A stretch of 64,000 nucleotides of DNA from Epithemia pelagica (GCA_946965045.2 OX337230.1:1240001-1304000); one strand, 5' to 3'; positions 10,637 to 38,154 are shown, counted from the first letter of the stretch. A program made the numbers and translations. The notes: generated by a model not told the origin, from the sequence alone.

Positions 10637-10810
10637 CTCAACTTCCCTGGTGGCACGACGAAGCCGAATCTTGAATCGGCAAAAGAAGTGCGACTAAAAC
10701 TCACCGTGGGAGGTAGCCCGATGGGAAAAAGCGACGAGGAACGACAGCCCAACCGCCGGCAACTTGCGATTTCCTACCATCCCATTCAAATCTTCATTCC
10801 TTTCTTCCAC

Positions 10811-11345
10811 ATGATGTCTCGTTCATTGTTCAAGGTGCTCCCCAAAGTGCCCCCGGGAGGAGCGACGACGATTGCTCATCGTCGTTGTGTTGGCCAAAGC
10901 CGTTGGAAATCCACAGCGTTCGGCAAGAACGAAATGGACGAAATTTCGCCACGAGACGAAATCAACAAGCTCTCCACGAAGATGGACACTCTGGCGAGTC
11001 TCCATGTTCGTGCTGAGATTCTTGATTTCGTCTCGCAATATCAACAACGAAATTTCGTCCTTTTCCTTCTTGCCGACCTGCACAAAGATGGACAAGGAGA
11101 CGAGCAAGAGAGTGATCGAGGTAGTGATCGGGTTAGGGGGACTCATGCTTTCCCTCTATGGCGCTGCCATCATCAATCTTCAAGCGCATTCAAGTACCGT
11201 CACTGATAGATTCAATGGCGTCGCGGATAGATTCAATTCCGTCGGTGATAAATTCGACGGCGTTTCGCATCGTTTTGATGCGCAAGATGCCAGAATCGAT
11301 GCCCAACAAGTAAAGATCGAATTTCCCAACAAGAATGGCCGCTAG
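10811..11345 (+). pseudogene. Small mitochondria-targeted coiled-coil/TM family, copy 1 (frameshifted by internal inverted duplication)
   Basis: MMSRSLFKVLPKVPPGGATTIAHRRCVGQSRWKSTAFGK... is nearly identical to the copies at 28235, 31554 and 34898. The TM helix and C-terminal heptads (VIGLGGLMLSLYGAAII...DRFNGVADRFNSVGDKFDGVS) lie in a different frame after the inversion. Confidence 0.8.
10920..11076. repeat. Imperfect foldback inverted repeat (arms 10920-10990 and 10997-11076, 6-nt loop)
   Basis: The right arm is the reverse complement of the family segment GKKEKDEISLLILRDEIKNLSTNME. The left arm is the same segment in sense with a 9-nt deletion and several substitutions. Loop ctggcg. Confidence 0.85.
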
Positions 11346-11589
11346 TAGTTTGTCCTTTGTGCATGTCGGGGCGTCGTGTATGCGATAACTATTTCATAGA
11401 TAATGAGTTTAGAAAATCATCATTGCCTTTTCGAGTCGAAACACTACTTTGGTTTTGGTACAAACGCCTCCGTGGGAGCACGGGGATTTCCTTCGCATTC
11501 ATCAGTTTTGGCTGGGATACGGCGGCTCTTGGGAGAGATACGCGGGATCACGTAAGAGTCTCGATTCACACCTCCCTCCATTCACAGAG

Positions 11590-11690
11590 CAGACGGATTC
11601 GAACGGTGGCAGACGGATTCGAACGGTGGGGAAAATGATGGTGTCCCCTTCAAGTTTACATTGCCTGGCATGAGTGCTTACAAAACGACC
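11590..11690 (+). repeat. Junction with 20-bp tandem duplication followed by a ~75-bp copy of the 3' coding end of the plastid gene at 27473-27545
   Basis: cagacggattcgaacggtgg occurs twice (11590-11629). The following aaaatgatggtgtccccttcaagtttacattgcctggcatgagtgcttacaaaacgacc matches aaaatgctggtgtcccttacaagtttaccgtgccgggcatgagtgcttacaaaacgacg. Confidence 0.8.
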
Positions 11691-12045
11691 CTGGGGTCTG
11701 GGAGGGCCCTCCCAGTGCATGGTGATGATAATAACAAAACCATCAACCACGCATCCTAGCTATGTCATCTACACACTCCGAAGCTCAACGTCCGAAAGTA
11801 AAGAGACGCGTAACGAAAGAAACATTCCCGCCTTCATGTGCTACTGCTATGAGGAGCATCGCTTGGAGTAGCATCGCTTGGACAAGGAGTCATTCTATTA
11901 GGTAAAAGCTCACAATATAAGAAAGCTGTCCGTATTGTCTCCAGCCTACTAGTACAACGCACAGCCAACTTGTTGCAAAGAGCTTGATCACCTCGGTTGC
12001 CTCAAGTTGCCTCCTTATCCGAAGTTATCGTGAATTTAGTATACA

Positions 12046-23000: not shown

Positions 23001-24655
23001 CGACCCCACTACCCACAGGTACGCCCATTCAAAGTCCTATTGTTACCACTGCCTTGCCGACACGGGAGGAAAACGAGGAGGTGGTAATAACAGCACCAGA
23101 TGATGATCCAGTGGAAACGGATTCACCCATGCAACACGTGACTCTGGCACCCACGACAGTACTGACTCAACCATCCTTGTCTCCCATTGTGTCATCCTCC
23201 TCCACGACAGCTCCACAATCGGCGACTCCTCAGCCCCCACCGTCGTCCTCTTCTCCCGTGTCACAACCACCCTCTCCATCGGTTGTTGCACCCGTTTCTC
23301 AACCTCCTTCTGCTTCTCCTCTTGTTGCACCCACCTCAGCTCCGTCCTCACCGGTCACCCCCTCTCCTCCCATCACGCCGACACGGGCTCCCACACCGGC
23401 TCCAATGGCAGGACCGACACCACCTCCGTCGCCGTCTCCCACTGTCATGCCAACACCCGCACAACCGGCTGCATGGTACTTGGTGGGTTGGTCCTTGACC
23501 ACGACCAGTAGCGGTACCGGATACGGTACGGCGGTTGCCTTGGCCCAAGACCTTGTTGTTGTTGCGGAACCTCTGCAAAGCAATGGAGGGCAGGTGCACA
23601 TTTATCGTCGTGAATCCACGACGAGGAGTAGTCCAGCCACACCCAATTCCGATGGTAGTACCATGGACGAATGGATCTTGTTGGATACGATTGTCGATTT
23701 GACGGCTCTGGAATTTGGATCGGCCGTCGATGTGTCGATGGTGGCCGGACAAGCCAGTGTCGTCATGGGTGCTCGGGAAACCCGCGATACCGGCGATGTG
23801 GCTCATTTTGGATCAGTGCACTATTACGAATACTCCACAACAAGTGGTAGCAGCAATCCGTATACCAATTTGCAACCCGTGGGATCGCGCATGGCACCTC
23901 CCGTGTCTGTGTATGAAACAGGGGGACAATTTGGGTCGACGGTAGCCATGGCCCGGACCAGCAATCGTCGAATTGCCATGGGTGCTCCGGCCAGTGGAGA
24001 TTTTGGAAAGGCCAAGGCAGGACGAGTCTATACATACGAATACGACGGCAGTCAGTGGCAACCCATGACGGCCCAACCCCTCGTCGGAGATGCCGGCTTT
24101 CGACTGGGCACTTCGTTGACCATGTCCCGAGAAGGAGATCGCATCTTTGTGGGTGCACCCGCCGGACACCAACAAGACGGATCCGTCTTTTATTACGAAT
24201 GGAATGACCAAGCGGGCGAATGGGAATCCATTTTTTCCTTGCGGGGTCAAACCTCGCAGGAACAAGCGGGCACGTCTGTGGCCATTCTCAATGACAGTGG
24301 CAGTCTGATTGCCTTTGGCGGACCATCCTACAATGTCCATCAAGGTGTCATTCGAGTTTTTAGCGATATTGGAGGTGGCTTTTTTGTGCAACGTGGTCCC
24401 GACATTGTCGGATTGGATCAAGAACGCATTGGGACGACCTTGTGTGGCGCCCAAAATCGAATCGGCTTTGGCACGGCGACGGGATCGTGGTATGTCTATG
24501 AATACAATGGCACCGACCAGTGGGTCTCGGTTGCGACGACCGAACCAACCAACAATGTGGGAGCGGCCGTGGTTTCCATGGACATGTCCCACGATGGTAC
24601 CATGGTGGTCCTTGGCTTTGCCAATGAAGAAGTGCATGTTTATGAGTTACGATAG
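20090..24655 (+). CDS. Type II membrane protein with two FG-GAP beta-propeller domains separated by a Pro/Ser/Thr linker (~1521 aa)
   Basis: Single ORF with ATG at 20090. TM IVCAIGLAFAIGILMTVAAVGGMVWFV. Repeats FGTSVSVS..LVVGAP, FGMAVDIN..LGVGAP, LGQSVTF..VAVGAP, then a second set YGTAVAL, FGSAVDVS, FGSTVAMA..IAMGAP, LGTSLTMS..IFVGAP, AGTSVAIL..IAFGGP. Confidence 0.85.
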   Translation: MSQPNRNSLHQNGTTVGRRRRPDSDDHHHHLLRPATTNRLVEDGTAVSDYTEITVEEDEEQQDTHQLDPPTSSIRSTESRDDDENEFKDEEAYDSAMPQEYFDDDDNNMNHAAYEPYPEDYPARPGAHEADGAMAPMISFVPRPSAAAAAGMDEDTSTLSMGMDTLQQINHYGSAMAAHGAPYHPSTTTAPVAATRSTPPRPGLVIQQPVSSTNQPPFQSSSSSSSSAQRHQLSTIHNASPNSSSNHSPPELSIEDSVFLAHFRNMTSQPSPDNNHRIFTNNSNQSSPEPQDRSHRGVLTTTYQQQQQTKDQVPPLLRTAQDPPAATPRGGGAAVAHSATTGRRSHLWSTAPTPSSQQAPRPQPQPGTPTQNGGRRGAVPPPPSSRSQHPPSRGGGGGGRPLPSHSDPTIQLASSRPRVSSHNSPAAVDVELSTQVAERRPGGGSPPQQASPNAFPLYSPEPLPDDEQESFLESSSQYTSSRGGHRKQVTIVCAIGLAFAIGILMTVAAVGGMVWFVPLITNQNDDNDTNRTEPLGPTMAPSASPSRQEGVVDMELEQAFPFLNDDTTNTGDGWTTSVALSDSLLVLGTVDGTVLTYQKQTSTTSGDMATWTLVQQMEHFVYCADMELITDPSNDKVYLVVGDPDSGNAGSGAALVYAFDRNYNVWQELGISLVGISADDPTTTNGGDSQFGTSVSVSLTPNPRNPNQMEPRLVVGAPEHTNNDGTPLAGRVMVYHYQESTVNNFEWTPDTSFTLNGVVANGRFGMAVDINPDGTTLGVGAPGDSSFYLYEWDGTQWTQALHRQYPTELDLGQSVTFLSNTLVAVGAPSAQNNRGTIRSWYKDETDHTWKELDQVLVGVQQGDRLGKTASLAGGSVGGNQDTLLVAVTDSGRVHRYDFDSATKRFAQRFELILGAMPSALAILTPQQTTTNTNRSPFKVLVGFEGTNAPAAATLFTTTSQESGSVPTPPQPTPLPTGTPIQSPIVTTALPTREENEEVVITAPDDDPVETDSPMQHVTLAPTTVLTQPSLSPIVSSSSTTAPQSATPQPPPSSSSPVSQPPSPSVVAPVSQPPSASPLVAPTSAPSSPVTPSPPITPTRAPTPAPMAGPTPPPSPSPTVMPTPAQPAAWYLVGWSLTTTSSGTGYGTAVALAQDLVVVAEPLQSNGGQVHIYRRESTTRSSPATPNSDGSTMDEWILLDTIVDLTALEFGSAVDVSMVAGQASVVMGARETRDTGDVAHFGSVHYYEYSTTSGSSNPYTNLQPVGSRMAPPVSVYETGGQFGSTVAMARTSNRRIAMGAPASGDFGKAKAGRVYTYEYDGSQWQPMTAQPLVGDAGFRLGTSLTMSREGDRIFVGAPAGHQQDGSVFYYEWNDQAGEWESIFSLRGQTSQEQAGTSVAILNDSGSLIAFGGPSYNVHQGVIRVFSDIGGGFFVQRGPDIVGLDQERIGTTLCGAQNRIGFGTATGSWYVYEYNGTDQWVSVATTEPTNNVGAAVVSMDMSHDGTMVVLGFANEEVHVYELR

Positions 24656-24954
24656 ATCCACCCATTAGGATCTACAAATTTACTAGACACCCCGTTCTTC
24701 CTCCAAAAGACAAATAGATTGATTTGGAGCTTTCGAATTCGTTCCCAACGAGCATCCAAATAAACAATGCTTGGAGAGATGAGTCCGTATCAGCTCAACC
24801 ACTAGCTTCCTAGGTACCTGCCTTGTTGGTTCGTCGTGTTGTGTGTTCTCGCAGCGGCCGCACGTCTCAAGTTTTGCGGTTGCACCACGCAGACGGTACG
24901 CATACTTGCGGCTTGCTTGTGTCATCCACGATATCGATACACAGGAATTTGCCC

Positions 24955-26409
24955 TTACGAGGAGAAAGATGGTTCTGGTTGCTCGTGGAGCACCTTGTTG
25001 AACCGGTTGACCCAGGGACTTGTTGTTGATGACGTTGTTGTTGTGGCGGACCGTGTCGACGAAGCGCGTTCCAGTTGTTGGGCAATCCAGGCTTGTTCCG
25101 ACTCCAGAGGATTGTCCGGTATCGAATCGGTGGGCGGGTCCCCTGGTTGCCACCACCACGACCACCACCAAGAGTGGGACGACCGAAACGGTTGTTGTTG
25201 TTGTTGTTGTTGGTCCCGTTCCGATGCCAGACTGCGCTGCCACAAGGACGTGGCTTGATCGACACGGTCCAGGACTTGGTGTGCGAGGTCATCGCGAGGA
25301 ATCACCAGAGTATTGGACCATTGCGTGGCCTGGTCCGGATGGTCTAACAAAAAGTGCAACAGTCGTCCTTCGTTCTTTTGAGGAATCATCAAGGTGGATT
25401 GCAAGGTAAGCAGCAGAGTGGGAAGAGGATTTGTCACTGTCGACGCTTCACTGTACTGTTGATGCATATCGACATGCCATTGAACCATTTGTTGGACCAT
25501 GAGCTCGAGGTCCTTCCAGGTCGGTGGTGGTGGCACTGTTGCAGGGTGGTCGTTGTGTTGGGCAGTGCCTTGTGGCGGTGGCACATGTGTCTCGTCTTGG
25601 GCCACCAAGGCCACATCGACGGCTTCCAACAAAACGGGCAATGAAATGGTATGAATGACCTTGACATTGGTCATGCTAGTAGTAGTAGTTGCCCGTGGAT
25701 GGTGGGATATCGTTCCCATGATGTGTGAAATGTCGTCCGGTGTGAAAGCCACGTGTACGTTCCAGAGTGCTCCTTCGTGTGAAGAAATGTGAGTGACGAG
25801 CTCCATTACAAAGTCGTGCAACACGTGTCCCAAGACTCCCGGAGGACAAATCAAAATCACCTGGGTTGTCGTCGTGGTGCTAGAGGCTGCCACATGATTT
25901 TTGGTGGGTGTCAAAACCTCGACCATGTCTTGGGCTCCGGCAGCGGCATCGTCGGGCCACAATTGCCAGGCCCGTCCCGGTGGTGCCGCGTCCATGATCC
26001 AGGCCTGTTCTTGTTGCGGTTGTTGTGGTTGGTTCCTGTTGTTCCTTCCTGGGTGTTGTATCTGGGGAACAGGCTTTGATTGGAATTCCAAGTTTCGTTG
26101 TTCCAGAAGGAGTGGTGTCGTTTCCTCCTCGACATTTTGCAACTGCAAACTCAACACCAATATAGCCGCTGTCCAAAACATACCGGCACCGACCGCCACC
26201 AATCCCCATACTACTTTTTGCTTTTGTTGTTGTTGTTGTCTTCCAGCCGTGCGCCGCCGCCGCCGGCGATTGGGTGTGTTGTGTGACACTCGGGTGGAAG
26301 GAGGTTCCTCGTCGGTTTTCTTGTGGTTGTTGTTGTCGGTGGTTGTACTGACACCCACTGGTGCCAAAGGAGAACAAGTAGAGGAGCAATGCGACAGGGG
26401 CACCAACAT
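24955..26409 (-). CDS. Hypothetical single-pass membrane protein (484 aa)
   Basis: Long ORF with basic RRRRRR, TM VVWGLVAVGAGMFWTAAILVLSL and a globular C-terminal part. No confident family. Confidence 0.6.
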   Translation of the reverse strand: MLVPLSHCSSTCSPLAPVGVSTTTDNNNHKKTDEEPPSTRVSHNTPNRRRRRRTAGRQQQQQKQKVVWGLVAVGAGMFWTAAILVLSLQLQNVEEETTPLLLEQRNLEFQSKPVPQIQHPGRNNRNQPQQPQQEQAWIMDAAPPGRAWQLWPDDAAAGAQDMVEVLTPTKNHVAASSTTTTTQVILICPPGVLGHVLHDFVMELVTHISSHEGALWNVHVAFTPDDISHIMGTISHHPRATTTTSMTNVKVIHTISLPVLLEAVDVALVAQDETHVPPPQGTAQHNDHPATVPPPPTWKDLELMVQQMVQWHVDMHQQYSEASTVTNPLPTLLLTLQSTLMIPQKNEGRLLHFLLDHPDQATQWSNTLVIPRDDLAHQVLDRVDQATSLWQRSLASERDQQQQQQQPFRSSHSWWWSWWWQPGDPPTDSIPDNPLESEQAWIAQQLERASSTRSATTTTSSTTSPWVNRFNKVLHEQPEPSFSS

Positions 26410-26750
26410 GGTTGAAATTCACGCCAATCTCTCGGATCGACTCTTGCTTTCCCTGACTTTGACGTCTCTGGTCTATGCCTTCCTATTGTTCGCAGCGCAG
26501 ATATTCGTTCAGAAGACTAGCCGCTCTGCGCGATCGCGGGCCGGCTCGTTCCCGCCCGATTCCTACATGCGACCGCGATGTTTGTTTCCCGAATTCACGC
26601 CCACGTGCGTCTCACAAGCGATCAAGAACCGAGCAGACAACTTCAAGAACGTGACGTGGCTCTTCACAAATTGACCTTACGACAACGTCGAGATCCAACA
26701 AAAGAAAGCAAGCAAGAAAGAAGAGACGACACTCGACACACTGGAGAACA

Positions 26751-27560
26751 ATGATGACAATCAAGACTACAACAACTGTATGGCTGGCCCTTGCCGTGGC
26801 CTTGGTGAGCAACTTCAATGTATTGCCAGTGCAAGCCTTGGTAGTCTCCCCATCCAAGCCAACGTCTGTGACGACGACGACGACGAGTCGTCGACAATGG
26901 TTCAACGTGGTTGTGGGCGGTCTTGCGGCCACCACGATTCCGTCTCGCCCCGCCCAAGCCGATACCGGTGCCAACGTACGAGGCATTGATATGACGCCCT
27001 TTAATGGACTCATTTTCAATTACCGAGCATCCGACAGTCCCAGTAGTTTGCAGGCCAGTGACTTGGACGAACCCAGCATTTCCTACGCCGATTTTTGTCA
27101 AAAACTCAAGGATGGACAAGTTCAGTTTGTCGAATTTATGGCACCCAATGGAGATGCTGCCTACGCCACTCTCAAGGGACAAGAAGACAACCCCATTCGG
27201 GTCGGAGAAGGTACGCCGCAATGCGTCTGGAATATTTTTGTGGATGTAACTGGGAACCATGCCAAAACAACGTGAGTTCTCACACCCTTGGCTGTTGCAT
27301 TATTTCGTTTTCACTGGATTGGATTGTGCCCCACCATTCCACGTCACGTTTCTCGTTGGGTGGTCCCTTTGTCACCACTCTCCATTTGACACACGCACGT
27401 ACACACTTGCCCTTTCGCCATAACAGGCTATCCTATTGAACAATCGGATGGATGGAGCAGTCCGGCCTTTGCCATTCGAACGGTGCAAAATGCTGGTGTC
27501 CCTTACAAGTTTACCGTGCCGGGCATGAGTGCTTACAAAACGACGACCCCTAAAAAGTAA
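26751..27560 (+). CDS. Plastid/thylakoid-targeted protein resembling a stand-alone FtsH lumenal domain; exons 26751..27210 and 27427..27560 (197 aa)
   Basis: Signal peptide, transit peptide, twin-arginine SRRQW and A-Q-A cleavage site, then SISYADFCQKLKDGQVQFVEF. A phase-1 intron (GTACG 27211, aacAG 27426) gives GYPIEQSDGWSSPAFAIRTVQNAGVPYKF...stop. Confidence 0.7.
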
Positions 27561-27780
27561 CAAAATGAGGACATTTATTTGCGGACCAAGGCTCTTTCTG
27601 TTTCCCGCCCCTATTGTCTTGTATGTTGTATCGTGCACCGCTTTCCACGCTCCACGCCCATGGTCCGCGCGCGCCCAAGAACATGATACAATACTGTGGT
27701 AGGAGTTTCCGTTGCAACCTGTACTCGTATTTAGTCATCAGGATCCTCTAACTCCCTCCAACCACAAAATAAGGCATCCA

Positions 27781-27972
27781 GATGAGAAGAAACGATCAAG
27801 CGCAATGTCCTCCAATCTGGAAAAGGCACTTCGTGTGAGGTTTGACAGCAACATTGACTTTGTGGCGAACGAGAAGAGTTCTGAGCGTCGTTTTGAGCAA
27901 CAAAGACTTCAGAAAGAATGTGTCTCGAACGAGGAGTCTTCACTGGAAAATCTGTTGCTTCTTTTGCGTTTT
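27781..27972 (+). repeat. Truncated copy of exon 1 of the gene at 38484 (direct repeat of about 38460..38652)
   Basis: About 190 bp of near-identity; both encode MSSNLEKxLxVRFDSNIDFVANEKSxERRFE...NEESSLENLxLLLRF. This copy diverges just before the splice donor seen at 38656. Confidence 0.85.
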
Positions 27973-28234
27973 ACGTGCTTTGAAAAAATTTTGAGTTTTG
28001 AACGTGCAACTACACAACTCAGCGCTCTTTTCTGGTTTGGCCTCAGGCAGCCGTTGCCACATGCCACAGCCAACCAGAGAGAGAGAGTCTTAAAAGCGCT
28101 AAGGCTTACCAAGAGCAGGCAATTTTGTGTCAAACGATTGTGGAGTCGGACTGCTGACACAAATTTGTGAGCCCAAGCTTATGAAACCGCCTGCGACTTG
28201 CGAATGCCTATCATCTTCATTCCTTTCTTCTATA

Positions 28235-28654
28235 ATGTCTCGTTCATTGTTCAAGGTGCTCCCCAAAGTTCCGCCGGGAGGAGCGACGACGATTGCTCAT
28301 CGTCGTTGTGTTGGCCAAAGCCGGTGGAAATCCACCGCGTTCGGCAAGAACGAAAAGGACGATATGTCCTTTTCGACATTGCGAGACGAAATCAAGAATC
28401 TCAGCACGAAGATGGACACTCTGGCGAGCAAGATTGTGATCGGGATAGTGGTCGGGATGGGGGGACTAATGCTCTCTCTATATGGCGCTGCCGTCACCAT
28501 CCTACAAGCGCATTCCAGTACCGTGGCTGGACGCTTCGATGGCGTCTCTGATAAACTCGACGGCGTTTCACATGGTTTTGATGCGCAGGATGGCAAAATC
28601 GATGCCCAACAAGTGAAGATTGACTTTTCAAACAAGAAAGACCGCATTTGGTAG
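28235..28654 (+). CDS. Small mitochondria-targeted coiled-coil/TM family, copy 3 (intact, 139 aa)
   Basis: R/K/S/T-rich, acid-free N-terminal ~35 aa, heptads, TM IVIGIVVGMGGLMLSLYGAAVTIL, then C-terminal heptads RFDGVSDKLDGVSHGFDAQDGKIDAQ. Confidence 0.7.
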   Translation: MSRSLFKVLPKVPPGGATTIAHRRCVGQSRWKSTAFGKNEKDDMSFSTLRDEIKNLSTKMDTLASKIVIGIVVGMGGLMLSLYGAAVTILQAHSSTVAGRFDGVSDKLDGVSHGFDAQDGKIDAQQVKIDFSNKKDRIW

Positions 28655-28698
28655 TTTGTGCTTCTTGTTTGAAAAGTCAATCTTCACTTGTTGGGCAT
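28602..28698. repeat. Perfect 37-bp inverted repeat (23-nt loop) spanning the stop codon of family copy 3
   Basis: 28602-28638 atgcccaacaagtgaagattgacttttcaaacaagaa equals the reverse complement of 28662-28698. The right arm is absent from the equivalent position of the other copies. Confidence 0.95.
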
Positions 28699-29215
28699 GC
28701 CGGGGCGTCGTGTATGCGATATAACTATTTGATAGATATTGAGTTTAGAAAATCATCATTGCGTGTTGAGTCGAAACACTATTTTGGTTGTGTTTGTACA
28801 AACGCTTCCGAGGAAGCGCGGGGATTTCCTTCGTATTCACTAGTTTGGCTGGGATACGGCGGCTCTTGTGAGGGACCCGCGGGATCACAGAAGAGCCTCG
28901 TTCACATCTCCCTCCATTCAGAGACCAGACGGATGATAACAAACGAATAAAAATAACAAAATGTACTCGGCGAAGGGGACGACTCCAATGCAAATGTCCT
29001 TGCGCATCGTGTGGTTGGAATAATGTCGCTACCAACAACGTGTTCGTGGATCAATTTCACACCACTGTTCAGATGACAACAACAACATGGCCCACAAATC
29101 AACGAGCAACGAGACGCTACTGGAAGGACAATGATAGCCAAAAGTATTCCAATCCAGAACGTGTCATGCCTCATGAGAATAGCATTCCACGCAAAACCAG
29201 TTGCTTTACGTGTGT

Positions 29216-31185
29216 CTATGTTACGGTCGTGCTTGTGTACGTGGTTTTTTGTGGAGGCCGTGGTCCGGGCGTCCATCCCTGATCCTGTGCCAAGGCAAGG
29301 GACAAGCGTTTCCAATCCTCGTACAGAGGGTCGTTGGTTGGACAGACTACGGCCGTGGCACAAACAGTCGTTGGAGGAACTTCTAGTGTTTCGTCGTCTC
29401 GTTGCCGCCGGCCATTCCACAAGTTTTTCTGATGTTGCAAGGCCACCACTTGGTCCGGATCGTCCTCCATGTCGTGGTGGTGAGGTCCGTCCAACGTCGT
29501 GGGAGGAGAGGCAATGGTACAGGGCAATTGCAAGCGCAAATTGCGATACGAGCTGGTTGTCGTCGTCTTGTTGTTGTTGTTGTCATTTGTGTTGGACGAT
29601 AGGACGACCAAATCCATGACACATTCGTATTCCAATTTGACGGGTAGTGTCGAGACACTGGGCACGGCTCGTTCCGGAATGAGCAAGGTCAAACAGACCC
29701 GTTGAGTTGTTTCGGGATCGATGCGTTCGTGGGCCGTACACAAGAGCAATTGCTGAGCTCGGGTTCGAGATTGATTCGTCGGTGTTGTTGTTGTTGTTGT
29801 TGCAGTTGTATTAGTGGATGGTGCTTGCACCCATTCTGAACCTTGCACACACGCACTGACTTGGACACAGGGGACCCAATCCTGGACAATGGGAGAATCC
29901 CGACGAGGAAAGTCCCATTGCAATACCAAACGACTACCGGGAGTCACGGACAAGCGGACATTCGTGTTCTTGTCGTCGTCACTGTTGCTGCGGGGTGTTT
30001 CGTAGGGTGCCAAAACGGTCAAGATGGAGACGGGAGAGCCTCCAATTGGATCTGTCACTCGCAAGACGGGGCCGGGAGGAGCATGGACATGAAAGGCGGG
30101 ACTTTTTCCACGAGGAACTGTCAAGAGCCGGGTTGATACCGTGGAGAGGCACCATGCCATTCCGTTGCCGTCAAGGAACAAGGCAATCCACCCGTCGTAT
30201 CTTGAACCGTCAATCGCGACGATGACGACGACGACCCGTCCGTGGTACTGACCCTGGTCCCCAGGACGCATCGTTGGACGAGGACAGGAAATTTCAACCA
30301 TTGGACCCTGCCCTCGGCCGTTTCCACACGGAGTAAAATGGCATAGGAAAAGCGACACGACACAGCCATGGTCAAGGTACTGGGCAAATCGTCCGGTAAA
30401 TCCGCTCGAAACGCAAAGGTCCTCCAAGCAGCATGACCTTCGGGAAAATGATCATTTTCTTCATCTGGCATGGCGGACAATGACAACTCTGAAACAGTCT
30501 CGGATGTCAACGGAGCATCCTCGTCAGTCTCGTCGTCGTCGTCAACGTTGGGTGGTGGATTGGCCCAATCCTCTGTGTAGCGAATGGGCCGTGGTCTCAC
30601 ATCATTGTACAGCGGCACAGCGCCAACGCCTTGTTGTGGTGGTGACAGGGCAAGTAGATTGACCATTGCATTGGGCCGCACATGGGAGGATGCTGGTTGT
30701 TGTTGTGGTTGTGGATTGGATGGTTGTTGTTGTGGTTGTTGTTGTGGTTGTGGACGATTGGATTCGGGCACGGCCGTCCAAAAGACACGATGCCGTTCCG
30801 GCAGAGTTCGTGGTAGGTTTCGGACGGCTTGCAAGACATGGACACGGTCCTTGGGTTGTTGGTGGTCTTCCAGTGGTGGTTCTTCTTCCTCACGGCCATA
30901 GGCTTCCATATAATGGCTCGTCTTGTGCCATCGACTGTCCAACCGACAATATCCCACCACACACAAGCCAAGAGATTTCCAGGGAGGAGGTGATGAAACT
31001 ACCAGTCGAGTTCCATGCGTAGGATTAGTATTCGTGTCGTCGTCGTTGTTGTTGTTGTTGCAATGACGTTGTCGCTGGACTTGAATGGTTCCGACAATGG
31101 CTTGTCCCGGTCGAACGACGGGTCGACTCAAGGTAACTTGTACCACATGCTGTTCTTTTGGTTCCTGCTTCGGTTCGTCGTCCAT
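29216..31185 (-). pseudogene. RGP1-like gene copy with frameshift
   Basis: Split into ORFs 30121..31185 and 29216..30427. At ~30121 the plus strand reads tcaag-ag-ccggg versus tcaag-gaa-ccggg in the intact copy (net -1), giving RYQPGS*. Confidence 0.8.
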
Positions 31186-31553
31186 GTCGTGTTGTAGTAG
31201 AGTGGGGCTTTGGTTGTCCTTCTTCTTGTGGTCGTTTGGGTGGGATTTCGTTTGGATCCTTTTTCGTCATGGCGTTTTGGATCTTATCATCGCGATGAGT
31301 TCTGTTCGCTTAGGGAGGGGGTTACACGTTTCGAAGATCGAAGGGAAAAGCTATTAGCTCTACCTATGGGTCGAGAGAGCTAAGCTTGTCTCTGAGTACG
31401 GGACTCTCTAGCTAGAGGAATACTCTAGCAGGCAATTTTGTGTCAAACGATTGTGGAGTCGGACTGCTGCCACAAATTTTTGAGCCCAAGCCTATGAACT
31501 TGCGAATGCCTATCATTATCATCCCATTCAAATCTTCATTCCTTTCTTCTATA

Positions 31554-32024
31554 ATGTCTCGTTCTTCATTGTTCAAGGTGCTCCCCAAAGTTCCGCCGGG
31601 AGGAGCGACGACGATTGCTCATCGTCGTTGTGTTGGCCAAAGCCGGTGGAAATCCACCGCGTTCGGCAAGACCGAAAAGGACGATATGTCCTTTTCGACA
31701 TTGCGAGACGAGATCCAGAATCTCAGCACCAAGATCCAGAATCTCAGCACGAAGTTGGACACGCTGGCAAGCAAGATTGACACGCAGGCAAGCAAGATTG
31801 TGATCGGGGTAGTGGTCGGGATGGGGGGACTCATGCTCGCCCTTTATGCCGCTGCCGCCACCAATTTTCAAACGTTTGCTAGTACCGTGTCTAGTCGGTT
31901 CGATGGCGACGCACAGAGATTCAACTCCATGTCCGAATTCCTTTCGCATCGTTTTGATGCGCAGGATGCCAAGATCAATGCCCAAGAAGTCAAAATTGAA
32001 TATACCAACAAGAAAGGCCGCTAG
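31554..32024 (+). CDS. Small mitochondria-targeted coiled-coil/TM family, copy 4 (intact, 156 aa, heptad-expanded)
   Basis: Same architecture as copy 3, with 21-nt duplications encoding IQNLSTK x2 and DT(L/Q)ASKI x2. Confidence 0.7.
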   Translation: MSRSSLFKVLPKVPPGGATTIAHRRCVGQSRWKSTAFGKTEKDDMSFSTLRDEIQNLSTKIQNLSTKLDTLASKIDTQASKIVIGVVVGMGGLMLALYAAAATNFQTFASTVSSRFDGDAQRFNSMSEFLSHRFDAQDAKINAQEVKIEYTNKKGR

Positions 32025-32559
32025 AAGTTGTGCTTTGTGCATGTCGGGGCGTCGTGTATGCGATATAACTATTTGATAGATATTGAGTTTAGAAAATCAT
32101 CATTGCGTGTTGAGTCGAAACACTATTTTGGTTGTGTTTGTACAAACGCTTCCGAGGAAGCGCGGGGATTTCCTTCGTATTCACTAGTTTGGCTGGGATA
32201 CGGCGGCTCTTGTGAGGGACCCGCGGGATCACAGAAGAGCCTCGTTCACATCTCCCTCCATTCAGAGACCAGACGGATGATAACAAACGAATAAAAATTA
32301 CACCATGTACTCGGCGAAGGGGACGACTCCAATGCAAATGTCCTTGCGCATCGTGTGGTTGGAATAATGTCGCTACCAACAACGTGTTCGTGGATCAATT
32401 TCACACCAATGTTCAGATGACAACAACAACATGGCCCACAAATCAACGAGCAACGAGACGCTACTATAAGGACAATGGTAGCCAAAAGTATTCCAATCCA
32501 GAACGTGCCATGCCTCATGAGAATAGCATTCCACGCAAAACCAGTTGCTTTACGTGTGT

Positions 32560-34529
32560 CTAGGTTACGGTCGTGCTTGTGTACGTGGTTTTTTGTGGAG
32601 GCCGTGGTCCGGGCGTCCATCCCTGATCCTGTGCCAAGGCAAGGGACAAGCGTTTCCAATCCTCGTACAGAGGGTCGTTGGTTGGACCGACTACGGCCGT
32701 GGCACAAACAGTCGTTGGAGGAACTTCTAGTGTTTCGTCGTCTCGTTGCCGCCGGCCATTCCACAAGTTTTTCTGATGTTGCAAGGCCACCACTTGGTCC
32801 GGATCGTCCTCCATGTCGTGGTGGTGAGGTCCGTCCAACGTCGTGGGAGGAGAGGCAATGGTACAGGGCAATTGCAAGCGCAAATTGCGATACGAGCTGG
32901 TTGTCGTCGTCTTGTTGTTGTTGTTGTCATTTGTGTTGGACGATAGGACGACCAAATCCATGACACATTCGTATTCCAATTTGACGGGTAGTGTCGAGAC
33001 ACTGGGCACGGCTCGTTCCGGAATGAGCAAGGTCAAACAGACCCGTTGAGTCGTTTCGGGATCGATGCGTTCGTGGGCCGTACACAAGAGCAATTGCTGA
33101 GCTCGGGTTCGAGATTGATTCGTCGGTGTTGTTGTTGTTGTTGTTGCAGTTGTATTAGTGGATGGTGCTTGCACCCATTCTGAACCTTGCACACACGCAC
33201 TGACTTGGACACAGGGGACCCAATCCTGGACAATGGGAGAATCCCGACGAGGAAAGTCCCATTGCAATACCAAACGACTACCGGGAGTCACGGACAAGCG
33301 GACATTCGTGTTCTTGTCGTCGTCACTGTTGCTGCGGGGTGTTTCGTAGGGTGCCAAAACGGTCAAGATGGAGACGGGAGAGCCTCCAATTGGATCTGTC
33401 ACTCGCAAGACGGGGCCGGGAGGAGCATGGACATGAAAGGCGGGACTTTTTCCACGAGGAACTGTCAAGAGCCGGGTTGATACCGTGGAGAGGCACCATG
33501 CCATTCCGTTGCCGTCAAGGAACAAGGCAATCCACCCGTCGTATCTTGAACCGTCAATCGCGACGATGACGACGACGACCCGTCCGTGGTACTGACCCTG
33601 GTCCCCAGGACGCATCGTTGGACGAGGACAGGAAATTTCAACCATTGGACCCTGCCCTCGGCCGTTTCCACACGGAGTAAAATGGCATAGGAAAAGCGAC
33701 ACGACACAGCCATGGTCAAGGTACTGGGCAAATCGTCCGGTAAATCCGCTCGAAACGCAAAGGTCCTCCAAGCAGCATGACCTTCGGGAAAATGATCATT
33801 TTCTTCATCTGGCATGGCGGACAATGACAACTCTGAAACAGTCTCGGATGTCAACGGAGCATCCTCGTCAGTCTCGTCGTCGTCGTCAGCGTTGGGTGGT
33901 GGATTGGCCCAATCCTCTGTGTAGCGAATGGGCCGTGGTCTCACATCATTGTACAGCGGCACAGCGCCAACGCCTTGTTGTGGTGGTGACAGGGCAAGTA
34001 GATTGACCATTGCATTGGGCCGCACATGGGAGGATGCTGGTTGTTGTTGTGGTTGTGGATTGGATGGTTGTTGTTGTGGTTGTTGTTGTGGTTGTGGACG
34101 ATTGGATTCGGGCACGGCCGTCCAAAAGACACGATGCCGTTCCGGCAGAGTTCGTGGTAGGTTTCGGACGGCTTGCAAGACATGGACACGGTCCTTGGGT
34201 TGTTGGTGGTCTTCCAGTGGTGGTTCTTCTTCCTCACGGCCATAGGCTTCCATATAATGGCTCGTCTTGTGCCATCGACTGTCCAACCGACAATATCCCA
34301 CCACACACAAGCCAAGAGATTTCCAGGGAGGAGGTGATGAAACTACCAGTCGAGTTCCATGCGTAGGATTAGTATTCGTGTCGTCGTCGTTGTTGTTGTT
34401 GTTGCAATGACGTTGTCGCTGGACTTGAATGGTTCCGACAATGGCTTGTCCCGGTCGAACGACGGGTCGACTCAAGGTAACTTGTACCACATGCTGTTCT
34501 TTTGGTTCCTGCTTCGGTTCGTCGTCCAT
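32560..34529 (-). pseudogene. RGP1-like gene copy with the same frameshift as unit 1
   Basis: ORFs 33465..34529 and 32560..33771; identical lesion at ~33465. Confidence 0.8.
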
Positions 34530-34897
34530 GTCGTGTTGTAGTAGAGTGGGGCTTTGGTTGTCCTTCTTCTTGTGGTCGTTTGGGTGGGATTTCGTTTGGA
34601 TCCTTTTTCGTCATGGCGTTTTGGATCTTATCATCGCGATGAGTTCTGTTCGCTTAGGGAGGGGGTTACACGTTTCGAAGATCGAAGGGAAAAGCTATTA
34701 GCTCTACCTATGGGTCGAGAGAGCTAAGCTTGTCTCTGAGTACGGGACTCTCTAGCTAGAGGAATACTCTAGCAGGCAATTTTGTGTCAAACGATTGTGG
34801 AGTCGGACTGCTGCCACAAATTTTTGAGCCCAAGCCTATGAACTTGCGAATGCCTATCATTATCATCCCATTCAAATCTTCATTCCTTTCTTCTATA

Positions 34898-35368
34898 ATG
34901 TCTCGTTCTTCATTGTTCAAGGTGCTCCCCAAAGTTCCGCCGGGAGGAGCGACGACGATTGCTCATCGTCGTTGTGTTGGCCAAAGCCGGTGGAAATCCA
35001 CCGCGTTCGGCAAGACCGAAAAGGACGATATGTCCTTTTCGACATTGCGAGACGAGATCCAGAATCTCAGCACCAAGATCCAGAATCTCAGCACGAAGTT
35101 GGACACGCTGGCAAGCAAGATTGACACGCAGGCAAGCAAGATTGTGATCGGGGTAGTGGTCGGGATGGGGGGACTCATGCTCGCCCTTTATGCCGCTGCC
35201 GCCACCAATTTTCAAACGTTTGCTAGTACCGTGTCTAGTCGGTTCGATGGCGACGCACAGAGATTCAACTCCATGTCCGAATTCCTTTCGCATCGTTTTG
35301 ATGCGCAGGATGCCAAGATCAATGCCCAAGAAGTCAAAATTGAATATACCAACAAGAAAGGCCGCTAG
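34898..35368 (+). CDS. Small mitochondria-targeted coiled-coil/TM family, copy 5 (same protein as copy 4)
   Basis: Translation identical to that of 31554..32024. Confidence 0.7.
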   Translation: MSRSSLFKVLPKVPPGGATTIAHRRCVGQSRWKSTAFGKTEKDDMSFSTLRDEIQNLSTKIQNLSTKLDTLASKIDTQASKIVIGVVVGMGGLMLALYAAAATNFQTFASTVSSRFDGDAQRFNSMSEFLSHRFDAQDAKINAQEVKIEYTNKKGR

Positions 35369-35903
35369 AAGTTGTGCTTTGTGCATGTCGGGGCGTCGTG
35401 TATGCGATATAACTATTTGATAGATATTGAGTTTAGAAAATCATCATTGCGTGTTGAGTCGAAACACTATTTTGGTTGTGTTTGTACAAACGCTTCCGAG
35501 GAAGCGCGGGGATTTCCTTCGTATTCACTAGTTTGGCTGGGATACGGCGGCTCTTGTGAGGGACCCGCGGGATCACAGAAGAGCCTCGTTCACATCTCCC
35601 TCCATTCAGAGACCAGACGGATGATAACAAACGAATAAAAATTACACCATGTACTCGGCGAAGGGGACGACTCCAATGCAAATGTCCTTGCGCATCGTGT
35701 GGTTGGAATAATGTCGCTACCAACAACGTGTTCGTGGATCAATTTCACACCACTGTTCAGATGACAACAACAACATGGCCCACAAATCAACGAGCAACGA
35801 GACGCTACTATAAGGACAATGGTAGCCAAAAGTATTCCAATCCAGAACGTGCCATGCCTCATGAGAATAGCATTCCACGCAAAACCAGTTGCTTTACGTG
35901 TGT

Positions 35904-37883
35904 CTAGGTTACGGTCGTGCTTGTGTACGTGGTTTTTTGTGGAGGCCGTGGTCCGGGCGTCCATCCCTGATCCTGTGCCAAGGCAAGGGACAAGCGTTTC
36001 CAATCCTCGTACAGAGGGTCGTTGGTTGGACCGACTACGGCCGTGGCACAAACAGTCGTTGGAGGAACTTCTAGTGTTTCGTCGTCTCGTTGCCGCCGGC
36101 CATTCCACAAGTTTTTCTGATGTTGCAAGGCCACCACTTGGTCCGGATCGTCCTCCATGTCGTGGTGGTGAGGTCCGTCCAACGTCGTGGGAGGAGAGGC
36201 AATGGTACAGGGCAATTGCAAGCGCAAATTGCGATACGAGCTGGTTGTCGTCGTCTTGTTGTTGTTGTTGTCATTTGTGTTGGACGATAGGACGACCAAA
36301 TCCATGACACATTCGTATTCCAATTTGACGGGTAGTGTCGAGACACTGGGCACGGCTCGTTCCGGAATGAGCAAGGTCAAACAGACCCGTTGAGTCGTTT
36401 CGGGATCGATGCGTTCGTGGGCCGTACACAAGAGCAATTGCTGAGCTCGGGTTCGAGATTGATTCGTCGGTGTTGTTGTTGTTGTTGTTGTTGTTGCAGT
36501 TGTATTAGTGGATGGTGCTTGCACCCATTCCGAACCTTGCACACACGCACTGACTTGGACACAGGGGACCCAATCCTGGACAATGGGAGAATCCCGACGA
36601 GGAAAGTCCCATTGCAACACCAAGCGACTACCGGGAGTCACGGACAAGCGGACATTCGTGTTCTTGTCGTCGTCACTGTTGCTGCGGGGTGTTTCGTAGG
36701 GTGCCAAAACGGTCAAGATGGAGACGGGAGAGCCTCCAATTGGATCTGTCACTCGCAAGACGGGGCCGGGAGGAGCATGAACATGAAAGGCGGGACTTTT
36801 TCCACGAGGAACCGTCAAGGAACCGGGTTGATACCGTGGAGAGGCACCATGCCATTCCGTTGCCGTCAAGGAACAAGGCAATCCACCCGTCGTATCTTGA
36901 ACCGTCAATCGCGACGACGACGCCGATCCGTCCGTGGTACTGCCCCTTGTCCCCAGGACGCATCGTTGGACGAGGACAGGAAATTCCAACCATTGGACCC
37001 TGCCCTCGGCCGTTTCCACACGGAGTAAAATGGCATAGGAAAAGCGACACGATACGGCCATGGTCAAGGTACTGGGCAAATCGTCCGGTAACTCCGCTCG
37101 AAACGCAAAGGTCCTCCAAGCAGCATGACCTTTGGGAAGATGATCATTTTCTTCATCTGGCATGGCGGACAATGACAACTCTGAAACAGTCTCGGACGTC
37201 AATGGAGCATCCTCGTCAGTCTCGTCGTCGTCGTTGTCGTCAGCGTTGGGTGGTGGATTGGCCCAATCCTCTGTGTAGCGAATGGGCCGTGGTCTCACAT
37301 CATTGTACAGCGGCACAGCGCCAACGCCTTGTTGTGGTGGTGACAGGGCTAAAAGATTGACCATTGTATTGGGCCGCACATGGGAGGATGCTGGTTGTTG
37401 TTGTGGTTGTGGATTGGATGGTTGTTGTTGTTGTTGCTGCTGTGGTTGTGGAGGATTGGATTCGGGCACGGCCGTCCAAAAGACACGATGCCGTTCCGGC
37501 AGAGTTCGTGGAAGGTTTCGGACAGCTTGCAAGACATGGACACGGTCCGTGGGTTGTTGGTGGTCTTCCAGTGGTGGTTCTTCTTCCCCACGGCCATAGG
37601 CTTCCATATAATGGCTCGTCTTGTGCCATCGACTGTCCAACCGACAATATCCCACCACACACAAGCCAAGAGATTTCCAGGGAGGAGGTGAAGAAACCAC
37701 CAGTCGAGTTCCATGCGTAGTATTGGTATTCGTGTCGTCGTCGTTGTTGTTGTTGTTGCAATGACGTTGTCGCTGGACTTGAATGGTTCCGACAATGGCT
37801 TGTCCCGGTCGAACGACGGGTCGACTCAAGGTAACTTGTACCACATGCTGTTCTTTTGGTTCCTGCTTCGGTTCGTCGTCCAT
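35904..37883 (-). CDS. RGP1: RGP1-like protein (arrestin-fold subunit of the Ric1-Rgp1 Rab6 GEF), intact 659 aa
   Basis: VQVTLSRPVVRPGQAIVGTIQV, FAFRAELPDDLPSTL...CRFSYAILLRV, GSRLVLQWDF...VPCVQVSACVQGSEWV, LCTAHERI...VCLTLLIPERAVPSVST..VKLEYEC, LRLQLPCTI follow the RGP1 motif order. Confidence 0.65.
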   Translation of the reverse strand: MDDEPKQEPKEQHVVQVTLSRPVVRPGQAIVGTIQVQRQRHCNNNNNDDDTNTNTTHGTRLVVSSPPPWKSLGLCVVGYCRLDSRWHKTSHYMEAYGRGEEEPPLEDHQQPTDRVHVLQAVRNLPRTLPERHRVFWTAVPESNPPQPQQQQQQQPSNPQPQQQPASSHVRPNTMVNLLALSPPQQGVGAVPLYNDVRPRPIRYTEDWANPPPNADDNDDDETDEDAPLTSETVSELSLSAMPDEENDHLPKGHAAWRTFAFRAELPDDLPSTLTMAVSCRFSYAILLRVETAEGRVQWLEFPVLVQRCVLGTRGSTTDGSASSSRLTVQDTTGGLPCSLTATEWHGASPRYQPGSLTVPRGKSPAFHVHAPPGPVLRVTDPIGGSPVSILTVLAPYETPRSNSDDDKNTNVRLSVTPGSRLVLQWDFPRRDSPIVQDWVPCVQVSACVQGSEWVQAPSTNTTATTTTTTTTPTNQSRTRAQQLLLCTAHERIDPETTQRVCLTLLIPERAVPSVSTLPVKLEYECVMDLVVLSSNTNDNNNNKTTTTSSYRNLRLQLPCTIASPPTTLDGPHHHDMEDDPDQVVALQHQKNLWNGRRQRDDETLEVPPTTVCATAVVGPTNDPLYEDWKRLSLALAQDQGWTPGPRPPQKTTYTSTTVT

Positions 37884-38154
37884 GTCGTGTTGTAGTAGAG
37901 TGGGGCTTTGGTTGTCCTTCTTCTTGTGGCCGTTTGGGTGGGATTTCGTTTGGATCCTTTTTCGTCATGGCGTTTTGGATCTTATCATCGCGCGAAGATG
38001 TTATGGTCGCTCAGGGATGGGGTTACACGTTTCGAAGATCGAAGGGAAAAGCTACAATATTAGCTCTACCTATGGGTCGAGAGAGCTAAGCTTGTCTCTG
38101 ATTACGGGACTCTCTAGCTAGAGGAATACTCTAGAAGGAGTTGAAAAGAGATGA

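Follow-up and report, generated by a model that had tools for sequence, protein, structure and literature searches.

The window, that is, the whole 64-kb stretch of DNA analysed here, contains five homologous small genes, which start at 10811, 28235, 31554 and 34898 on the forward strand and at 14016 on the reverse strand, as an earlier reading of the sequence alone (the sequence-only reading) had proposed. The architecture assigned to them at the time was also found: an acid-free, basic N-terminus (39-40 residues), a heptad region, one transmembrane helix and, in the intact copies, a second heptad region after the helix (Table 1). Three of the five copies are intact (copies 3, 4 and 5). The proteins of copies 4 and 5 are identical, and 1 nucleotide in ~1.67 kb separates the two copies; copy 3 has a mosaic structure, with 95-100% identity to copy 4 at its ends and 62-88% in the middle. 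The reading frame of copy 1 is broken by an inverted duplication of ~80 bp (10996-11076), and self-BLAST of this copy against copies 3-5 yields three matching blocks with an inverted block in between; the second part of its CDS is covered by an ORF at 10872-11345. Copy 2 retains only the 5' (N-terminal) half, and a foldback connects this half to a broken dispersed repeat. As it possesses neither the transmembrane segment nor the second coil, we regard it as a relic.

Copies 3-5 travel together because they are placed in a tandem array of three 3.3-kb units. The recent period of this array is 3344 bp, and its sequence is ~100% identical between 28769 and ~36457. The array also repeats the neighbouring gene, the 659-residue product of which weakly resembles Rgp1 (25.2 bits, under the 31-bit cut-off). 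Copies 3-5 therefore have the same neighbours, and the proposal that the copies sit among unrelated neighbours does not hold for these three. Two of the copies had further been assigned to a CRN/transposon island. The transposon part of this description stands, with dispersed repeats flanking copy 1 (at least 10 genomic copies) and copy 2 (at least 25), while the CRN label is unconfirmed; one neighbouring ORF matches the kinase-like DUF5898 (29.2 bits). Copies 1 and 2 are rearrangement products beside transposon debris.

Table 1. Features of the gene family and its surroundings, in window coordinates (strand given as + or -; a dot means no strand)
Feature	Position	Strand	Remarks
Copy 1, whole duplicated module	10751..11598	+	~60 bp 5' leader, broken CDS, 3' element
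Copy 1 CDS, part 1	10811..11005	+	leader and first heptads; from ORF/alignment
Copy 1 foldback	10920..11076	.	arms 10920-10991 and 10996-11076; 4-nt loop; shifts frame
Copy 1 CDS, part 2	11088..11345	+	other frame; last heptad, transmembrane segment, second coil, stop
Copy 1 3' element	11346..11598	+	homology stops sharply at CAGACGGAT
Second dispersed repeat	11785..12054	.	at least 10 loci; 190 bp downstream of copy 1
Dispersed repeat, internal piece	13448..13730	+	repeat of at least 1.5 kb, at least 25 loci; piece ends at copy 2 foldback
Copy 2 foldback	13713..13833	.	55-nt arms, 91% complementary; 11-nt loop; at truncation point, abuts broken dispersed repeat
Copy 2	13768..14077	-	5' leader, presequence (predicted), first coil only
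Dispersed repeat, terminal 62 bp	14279..14339	-	same repeat as 13448..13730; inverted relative to its other copies
Tandem array, three ~3.3-kb units	28114..38138	.	unit: small gene, 3' element, Rgp1-like gene
Copy 3 CDS	28235..28654	+	139 aa, intact
Copy 3 foldback	28602..28698	.	perfect 37-nt arms; 23-nt loop
Copy 3 3' element	28655..28934	+	100% identical to copies 4/5 elements from 28769 on
Neighbour gene, unit 1	29216..31185	-	two ORFs owing to 1-bp deletion near 30124
Copy 4 CDS	31554..32024	+	156 aa, intact, no foldback
Copy 4 3' element	32025..32278	+	
Neighbour gene, unit 2	32560..34529	-	identical 1-bp deletion, near 33468
Copy 5 CDS	34898..35368	+	156 aa, protein same as copy 4
Copy 5 3' element	35369..35622	+	
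Rgp1-like neighbour gene	35904..37883	-	array-borne, intact, 659 aa

Protein architecture and the basic leader

Intact members of the family are ~140-200 residues long and comprise a leader, a short acidic linker and an uninterrupted helix of ~110 residues. Along the helix, canonical heptads precede a glycine-rich transmembrane segment and an invariant Gln, and further heptads follow in which hydrophobic residues and Gln alternate in the core, most clearly in the repeat A-Q-D-x-K-h-D. The transmembrane segment is found at residues 60-119 (82-100 of 156 in copy 4), reaches a Kyte-Doolittle value of 1.5-2.4 over 19 residues and is followed by 40-90 residues of heptads. In the AlphaFold2 prediction, residues 1-45 have a pLDDT below 50 and residues 43-155 form one helix (pLDDT ~80).

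Across the family, the leader is a disordered, acid-free and basic stretch, 16-50 residues long, with R-x-(K/N/F)-(S/T) at its end; the first acidic residue occurs shortly after this motif, at position 17-51, and is preceded by 4-10 Lys and Arg residues. The end motifs (RWKST, RTKST, RHKST, RWNST, RWKSS, RFKSS and RTFTT) are present in almost every subfamily and in both foreign relatives, and in one cluster B paralog an early Glu precedes the motif. The leaders of two other organisms (including P0163) are unrelated in sequence, yet they are also basic and acid-free. The R-2 motif of mitochondrial presequences reads R-x↓x-S and the R-3 motif R-x-F/Y/L↓S/A/T. The N-terminus looks mitochondrial, in line with the sequence-only reading: in its lack of acidic residues, its basic character, its disorder and its R-2/R-3-type end, the leader resembles a presequence. 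In cluster B, the leader together with 105 bp upstream is 99% identical at the nucleotide level to the corresponding part of an unrelated head-to-head PLDc_2 gene, the product of which is a Nuc/MitoPLD-type HKD protein, and the homology stops directly after RTKS. Among the cluster B paralogs, the leader, coil and transmembrane types occur in shuffled combinations. The leader shared at 99% with the PLD-like gene represents a clean natural case of a putative targeting peptide gained by duplicating a promoter and the first codons.

From these sequence features we infer a mitochondrial location and function, and the proteins are probably rod-like mitochondrial membrane proteins. The leader would serve as a presequence for mitochondrial import that the matrix processing peptidase removes at the R-2 site, and the transmembrane segment would stop transfer in the inner membrane. 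On oligomeric state, topology and any cellular role we can only speculate: the proteins could line up in parallel as an oligomeric rod, its first coil on the matrix side of the membrane and its Gln-core coil on the side of the intermembrane space. The leader is conserved beyond the mature protein, which is unusual for presequences and may reflect gene conversion, not function.

Alternatively, the proteins could reside in the ER, the Golgi or the plasma membrane as type II single-pass proteins, with a cytosolic basic N-terminus and the central helix as signal anchor. A basic N-terminus followed 60-100 residues on by a transmembrane segment also fits a signal anchor, the hydrophobicity of the helix would be enough for SRP recognition, and the leader is unusually well conserved among paralogs. 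We nevertheless consider this explanation unlikely, as the leader is predicted to be disordered, is acid-free in almost every subfamily while unrelated in sequence in the two other organisms, ends in a conserved R-2/R-3-type processing motif, and acts as a portable cassette that is also found on the Nuc/MitoPLD-type HKD protein.

Pfam contains no applicable family for the window proteins. The sequence-only reading had compared them to CCDC90/DUF1640, which are mitochondrial coiled-coil transmembrane proteins, usually low-copy and C-terminally anchored; MCUR1 and CCDC90B are inner-membrane proteins. Like CCDC90, MCUR1 and Fmp32 (PF07798), the members of the window family are small, with an N-terminal mitochondrial presequence (predicted here), a coiled coil and a single transmembrane helix. 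Kinship was not borne out, however: the best score (copy 4, other members unlisted) was 14.3 bits (E=0.037) against a DUF1640 (PF07798) gathering cut-off of 33.5 bits, and a search of the own genome with PF07798 gave no match at E<=0.01. The HMM match covers only the junction between coil and transmembrane segment, and this segment lies in the middle of the protein instead of at its C-terminus, with a Gln-core coil of 40-90 residues after it. In addition, the window family is multi-copy (~22 loci) and lineage-restricted, not low-copy and pan-eukaryotic as CCDC90 is.

The heptad type (hydrophobic at a, Gln or Val at d) is common to ~580 HMMER matches (E<0.001), and unnamed bacterial proteins with R-F-D-A-x-D heptads (P0069, P0009, P0014) are likewise small with one transmembrane helix. 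P0069 is colinear with one paralog (M-N-x-K-F-x-E heptads, transmembrane segment, A-R-F-x-A-Q-D heptads) at 36% identity over 121 residues. In the other matches the alignment is limited to the repeats and the architectures vary; 89 of the 144 top matches checked have no transmembrane segment, and in 29 the segment follows the repeats. None of the bacterial heptad proteins carries a presequence or matches a Pfam or NCBIfam model, and their likeness to the window family could mean either homology or convergence of low-complexity heptads. The import logic predicted for the window family is like that of stop-transfer inner-membrane proteins of the Mic60/mitofilin type, in which a presequence that is cleaved off and one transmembrane segment are combined with a coiled coil on the side of the intermembrane space. 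The window proteins differ from these in being much smaller, in having coil on both sides of the membrane and in lacking the mitofilin domain, and we found no sequence similarity to any stop-transfer inner-membrane family. If the mitochondrial reading is true, the family would represent an undescribed, diatom-lineage-specific class of inner-membrane proteins in which a single helix supplies the coil on either side of the membrane and the core is lined by Gln, and it would help to explain how algal mitochondria gain lineage-specific components.

Foldbacks in copies 1, 2 and 3

Copies 1, 2 and 3 each contain a foldback, and these are the only close inverted repeats of at least 30 nt in the window. 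The predicted RNA hairpins are very stable (-47.9 kcal/mol and z -7.6 for copy 1, -85.7 kcal/mol and z -14.5 for copy 2, -63.5 kcal/mol and z -15 for copy 3), and no hairpin is predicted in copy 4. The copy 3 foldback straddles the end of the CDS: its left arm is the last part of the coding sequence, its loop contains the stop codon, and its right arm belongs to the 3' flank. The position of the foldback differs in the three copies, and they therefore arose independently.

That the window's close inverted repeats all fall inside family copies, are so stable when folded as RNA and arose independently at different positions would suit a hairpin-RNA locus, in which the foldbacks are transcribed to double-stranded RNA, feed RNA interference and silence the family in trans, the broken copies acting as regulators. 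We regard this as improbable. The complementarity of the copy 1 arms has fallen to 85-93%, so this foldback has not been maintained; the foldback of copy 2 marks a breakpoint at which a truncated repeat is joined, as is typical of fold-back repair or template switching; and no foldbacks were seen in the 9 other family loci scanned. The three foldbacks do offer a small natural series for the study of fold-back rearrangement in repeat-coding genes.

Family size, distribution and selection

The family first described from five copies is real but larger. A genome-wide count had been suggested, and a profile search of the own genome gave 30 matches, corresponding to ~22 loci, most of them on the chromosome of the window; ~13 loci are intact, and ~40% are truncated, frameshifted or interrupted by stops. 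A full HMMER search of 1.84 billion protein representatives found full-length relatives only in the own assembly and in two environmental contigs (P0163/P0018 and P0086), which agrees with the proposed lineage specificity. Neither contig has a DNA match in the own genome. The environmental contigs look genomic.

That this is a genuine coding family is confirmed by dN/dS below 1, by indels in whole codons or heptads and by the relatives in other organisms. In the mature part, pairs of window copies have dS 0.33-0.47, dN 0.15-0.25 and dN/dS 0.42-0.54, and of the three pairs, the two tested have a dN/dS significantly below 1 (Fisher p 0.009-0.014); dN/dS values of 0.4-0.75 were also obtained. In the leader, copy 1 compared with copies 3/4 has 4 synonymous and 0 non-synonymous changes (p=0.004). 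The description of the family as fast-evolving is apt for the mature part, where evolution is fairly fast (dN/dS ~0.45-0.75); in the leader, dN/dS is 0. In its near-identical ends (95-100%), core dS of 0.33, varying repeat number and shuffled types, the window family is like the recombining multigene families of the contingency/surface-protein pattern; it differs from them in that no positive selection was found, pairwise dN/dS being below 1.

The fraction of damaged loci, the fairly high dN/dS and the lack of a known domain could also be seen in a decaying or non-functional orphan family, the ORFs of which persist as the duplications are recent and heptad repeats seldom yield stop codons. Such decay is very unlikely given the significant constraint in both window pairs tested and in the leader, the indels of whole heptads, and the architecture shared by subfamilies of 23-40% identity to each other and by the two other organisms.

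On balance, we favour a lineage-restricted nuclear gene family of ~22 loci, ~13 of them intact, in what is probably a pennate diatom genome, that encodes presequence-led mitochondrial inner-membrane coil proteins and grows by local duplication and paralog recombination. The family expands through segmental and tandem duplications nearby. As the coil/transmembrane core diverges, paralogs that recombine or undergo gene conversion with each other keep a homogeneous 5' leader and 3' non-coding element (~250 bp). Gain or loss of 21-nt heptad units would vary the length of the rod.

Shared flanks and duplication

The shared flanks reported in the sequence-only reading were recovered: ~250 bp of 3' flank is common to copies 1, 3, 4 and 5 (84-100% identity), and copies 3-5 share a 5' flank that begins with agcaggcaatttt at 28114. 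In the 60.5-Mb genome, the 3' element occurs at just 5 sites, each adjoining a family gene, and the module of the window subfamily is present in 6 copies. The 3' element is better conserved than the coding sequence (81-87% identity while the CDS diverges to saturation); in the chromosome 5 copy it retains 81% identity although the dS of the CDS is ~0.95. The shared flanks fit a conserved transcription unit (leader and 3' element) kept alike by recombination between paralogs.

The same observations had been taken to indicate a possibly selfish module spreading with its own flanks. An 850-bp unit of leader, CDS and 3' element would then move or be moved as a cassette, through transposon capture or retroposition for instance, with the 3' element as a site of recombination or mobilisation. 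The retention of the 3' element on chromosome 5 points in this direction, as do the position of copies 1 and 2 among dispersed repeats, where copy 2 abuts a broken one, and the sharp end of homology between copy 1 and copies 3-5 at both borders of the 850-bp unit, for which tandem duplication does not fully account. However, in a search of the copy 4 module we found no inverted repeats of at least 20 nt, terminal ones included; the 3' module borders of the copies read showed no poly(A), and no terminal repeats were seen by eye at the borders read. Neither a transposase nor a reverse-transcriptase domain was found among the neighbouring ORFs scanned. The small number of modules and of 3' element sites argues against mobility as well, and one tandem array that carries a host gene explains three of the five window copies, and three of the six modules in the genome. 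Moreover, the short segment 11617-11689, just downstream of copy 1, has a second occurrence at 27474-27544, upstream of copy 3, as expected of an old tandem array. Mobility is very unlikely, and the spreading claim was not supported: the module is a transcription unit, not a mobile element, and the family multiplied by ordinary local DNA duplication, not by jumping.

A still more elaborate scheme, a recombining cassette system in which the leader and a 3' RNA element bracket a deliberately diversified core, the products being mitochondrial inner-membrane rods or pores in genetic conflict (mito-nuclear, killer-antidote or anti-viral) and the foldback copies hairpin-RNA regulators, strikes us as highly improbable. 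As it stands, this is a well-characterised orphan family, not a surprising system. Its 3' element is a candidate post-transcriptional control element.

A lineage-restricted family of small coiled-coil membrane proteins

ORF calls placed five homologues at the starts claimed by the sequence-only reading, and they aligned well with one another. The architecture claimed for them was also found: every copy opens with a basic, acid-free N-terminal stretch of 39-40 residues (hereafter the leader), followed by heptads and a hydrophobic helix, and a second heptad stretch is present in the intact copies. Copy 1 was handled as two pieces, which were searched separately and concatenated for codon counting only. 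Copies 4 and 5 are each overlain by an antisense ORF of 158 aa; the sense protein is absent from the public protein collection because gene prediction for the ENA assembly picked this antisense ORF.

By six-frame searches of the 60.5-Mb genome (23 contigs), we found ∼22 loci of the family, ∼13 of them intact. The subfamilies share 23-41% mutual identity with a constant architecture, and the paralogs of the second cluster, cluster B on contig 3, have differing leaders, coils of 3-9 heptads and two TM types in recombined combinations. Pairwise dN/dS was 0.36-0.76 among pairs diverged enough to measure, in support of a real and moderately fast-evolving family, and it was significantly below 1 in two pairs from the window (p=0.009-0.014). 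Indels comprise whole codons, mostly whole heptads. The family members are protein-coding and moderately constrained.

With the family alignment as input, AlphaFold2 predicted residues 1-45 to be disordered (pLDDT <50) and residues 43-155 to form a single continuous helix (pLDDT ∼80). The sequences show heptads of the canonical a/d pattern in the first coil, e.g. I-Q-N-L-S-T-K and M-N-Q-K-F-N-E. Next comes a glycine-rich membrane segment (type G-L-G-G-L-M-I-S-L-F-G-A), which is followed by an invariant Gln, and the second coil is hydrophobic at a with Gln at d, a pattern seen in 9/9 second-coil heptads of one cluster B gene, at C3:3951455.

When 1.84 billion representatives were searched exhaustively with HMMER, full-length relatives outside this assembly came up on two short contigs from other samples only, and a word-indexed protein search had the same outcome; lineage restriction of the family, which had been suspected, is thus upheld. 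At the DNA level, neither of the two contigs matches the E. pelagica genome. A further ∼580 HMMER matches were small bacterial proteins of diverse architectures that matched through C-terminal heptads (R-F-D-A-x-D repeats) only. In one of these bacterial proteins, P0069 (180 aa), a single TM helix lies between two heptad types ordered as in the diatom family, and the protein is colinear with the family through the membrane segment (36% identity over 121 residues), a resemblance that may reflect a distant origin or convergence of heptad repeats. Membership in DUF1640 (PF07798, CCDC90-like proteins) was not supported, as PF07798 scored 14.3 bits against a cut-off of 33.5; PF07798 had no match of its own in the genome. 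Pfam and NCBIfam gave generic coiled-coil matches only, all below threshold, for 15 family and related proteins; PDB sequences returned a GCN4 fusion construct alone (E=0.004), and the top cosine score in the ESM Atlas, 0.77, was uninformative. A scan of JGI metagenomes with two peptide patterns matched 225 stretches, of which 0 were confirmed, and a search of the literature turned up no account of such a family.

Features of the family and its surroundings. Plain numbers are positions in the window; C1, C3, C5 and C17 are contigs of the E. pelagica genome (G000)
Feature	Location	Description
Copy 1	10811 (+)	Broken by inverted duplicate (10996-11076) of its own preceding 80 bp; frame shifted
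Copy 2	14016 (-)	Leader and first coil only
Copy 3	28235 (+)	139 aa, intact
Copy 4	31554 (+)	156 aa, intact; protein sequence identical to copy 5
Copy 5	34898 (+)	156 aa, intact; protein sequence identical to copy 4
Antisense ORF, copy 4	31566-32042 (-)	158 aa
Antisense ORF, copy 5	34910-35386 (-)	158 aa
Family loci in the window		5 copies
Family loci on contig 5	C5	2
Single family locus	C3:3.63 Mb	1
Cluster B	C3:3.875-3.96 Mb	∼14
Single family locus	C3:4.30 Mb	1, degenerate
Relative P0018/P0163	Logan runs SRR29699973, SRR29699975	Full-length, environmental contig
Relative P0086	ENA ERZ27264566	Full-length, environmental contig
Bacterial protein P0069	L029:4001-4543	On a bacterial 2-Mb contig (ENA ERZ26050812)
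Recent tandem units	28769 to ∼33113	2.3 units, period 3344 bp
Older tandem array	28114-38138	Three units
Rgp1-like gene, unit 1	29216-31185 (-)	1-bp deletion near 30124, common to units 1 and 2; younger copy
Rgp1-like gene, unit 2	32560-34529 (-)	1-bp deletion near 33468, common to units 1 and 2; younger copy
Rgp1-like gene, unit 3	35904-37883 (-)	Only intact version
296-aa gene with PLDc_2 domain	G000:C3:3902509-3903396 (L039:1510-2397, +); also G000:C3:3916940	
Foldback, copy 1	10920-10991 / 10996-11076	Two blocks: 40 nt, 85%; 29 nt, 93%; -47.9 kcal/mol; z -7.6
Foldback, copy 2	13713-13767 / 13779-13833	55 nt, 91%; -85.7 kcal/mol; z -14.5
Foldback, copy 3	28602-28638 / 28662-28698	37 nt, perfect; -63.5 kcal/mol; z -15
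Candidate intron, copy 1	11006-11087	82 nt, GT..AG, 3' end pyrimidine-rich
Dispersed repeat, parts in window	13448-13730 and 14279-14339	Terminal 62 bp inverted, on the far side of copy 2
Dispersed repeat, contig 17	G000:C17:1848158-2040819	Ten copies ∼20.3 kb apart
DUF5898 ORF	14453-14782 (-)	109 aa; second copy at G000:C1:5607375

Tandem duplication and recombination between paralogs

Self-comparison of the window confirmed the shared flanks. In copy 1 (10751-11598), similarity to copies 3-5 runs from ∼60 bp before the ATG to ∼255 bp after the stop; in copies 3-5 the common sequence begins at 28114, where the motif agcaggcaatttt was read. It had been proposed that the family spreads with its own flanks, possibly as a selfish module. 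A selfish mobile module was not supported, since tandem duplication and recombination between paralogs account for the shared flanks. No terminal inverted repeats were present within the copy 4 module, no poly(A) tail at the module boundaries read and no transposase domain in the neighbouring ORFs scanned.

Comparison of each position x with x+3344 gave ∼100% identity across the recent tandem units, which are enclosed by the older array. Every unit of the array carries, besides a family copy, a minus-strand gene of 659 aa with a weak match to Rgp1 (25.2 bits, cut-off 31 bits). The 3344-bp spacing is likewise present in ENA assembly ERZ21939226, which, to judge by its contig names, is probably the same assembly at contig level and so does not count as independent proof of the array. 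Just outside the units, 11617-11689 matched 27474-27544 and 27779-27973 matched 38458-38652, and these pieces sit where an older, larger tandem array would be expected to put them.

The 5' flank and leader of copy 3 (28114 to ∼28400) are 95-100% identical to those of copy 4, as is the sequence from 28769 on; in between, the core of copy 3 (coil, TM and second coil) has only 62-88% identity to copy 4, with a part nearer to copy 1. Between the two copies, dS and dN were both 0 in the leader (dN/dS not applicable), and 0.33 and 0.15 in the mature part (dN/dS 0.45). A core dS of 0.33 between identical flanks is beyond normal mutation; recombination or gene conversion among the paralogs must have taken place. 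The leaders of copy 1 and of copies 3/4 gave a dS of 0.15 and a dN of 0 (dN/dS 0), with 4 synonymous changes and no non-synonymous ones (Fisher p=0.004).

The leader and a possible mitochondrial location

The leader is acid-free in almost every subfamily, the exception being an early Glu in one cluster B paralog, and it closes with R-x-(K/N/F)-(S/T); the first acidic residue follows a few positions later. The foreign relatives obey the same rule with leaders unrelated in sequence (RRTF|TT and RF|KSS). This closing motif matches the classical R-2 and R-3 motifs recognised by the matrix processing peptidase. A background for acid-free N-termini drawn from ORFs of the window was dominated by spurious ORFs, so that this comparison was uninformative.

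In cluster B, an unrelated PLD-like gene of 296 aa with a PLDc_2 domain (29.9 bits, cut-off 27) lies head-to-head with a family gene and carries a duplicate of its initial 30 codons and of the 105 bp upstream (99% nucleotide identity). The arrangement was seen twice, and the homology ends directly after R-T-K-S. The nearest solved relatives of the 296-aa gene by sequence were Nuc endonuclease (E=0.003) and, weakly, mitochondrial cardiolipin hydrolase (E=0.09-0.17). It looks as if the PLDc_2 gene acquired a targeting-leader cassette via inverted duplication, and the sharing of the leader with an unrelated gene lends independent support to a portable targeting peptide.

The proposed mitochondrial targeting was supported at the level of sequence features, and we give a mitochondrial location slightly better than an even chance. 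Such a protein would be imported via the presequence pathway, its TM segment would act as a stop-transfer into the inner membrane, and it would assemble in parallel into an oligomeric rod whose Gln-core coil lies in the intermembrane space and whose other coil lies in the matrix. For any specific role (spacer, scaffold or small pore) the odds are much lower than for the location.

The 3' element, foldbacks and dispersed repeats

The 146-bp core of the 3' element occurs at five genomic sites only, and in 5/5 cases a gene of this subfamily lies immediately upstream. Even the contig 5 copy, with a CDS dS of ∼0.95, retains 81-87% identity in the element, which is therefore either constrained or being homogenised. 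A coding function was rejected on either strand, as indels of 1 nt between copies disrupt the frames. Scans found no Rfam family and no tRNA in it, and the miRNA-like matches, all sub-threshold, were due to the perfect hairpin; RNAalifold gave 1/40 covarying pairs and hence no structural support. We read the element as a putative 3' UTR or regulatory element, which together with the conserved 5' leader may delimit a transcription unit.

Close inverted repeats of at least 30 nt in the 64-kb window amounted to three foldbacks only, one in each of copies 1-3 and at a different position each time; the loop of the copy 3 foldback holds the stop codon. The equivalent place in copy 4 had no foldback structure (z +1.1), and close foldbacks were found at 0/9 other family loci. 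The foldbacks are independent of one another. They may be by-products of fold-back repair or hairpin-RNA regulators. The copy 1 foldback encloses the candidate intron, splicing of which would restore the frame of copy 1, so that this foldback could possibly act as an intron.

The suggestion of a transposon island was right in part, as dispersed repeats lie beside copies 1 and 2. The broken end of one, a repeat of at least 1.5 kb with at least 25 loci, adjoins the copy 2 foldback, and its copies on contig 17 suggest a large tandem array there; a second dispersed repeat lies downstream of copy 1. The broken and inverted repeat at copy 2 and the second repeat after copy 1 mark these two copies as products of rearrangement. 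Near copy 2, a 109-aa ORF matches DUF5898 (29.2 bits, cut-off 28.9) and is probably a gene fragment; DUF5898 is mentioned in a survey of the bacterial kinome (PMC9758233).
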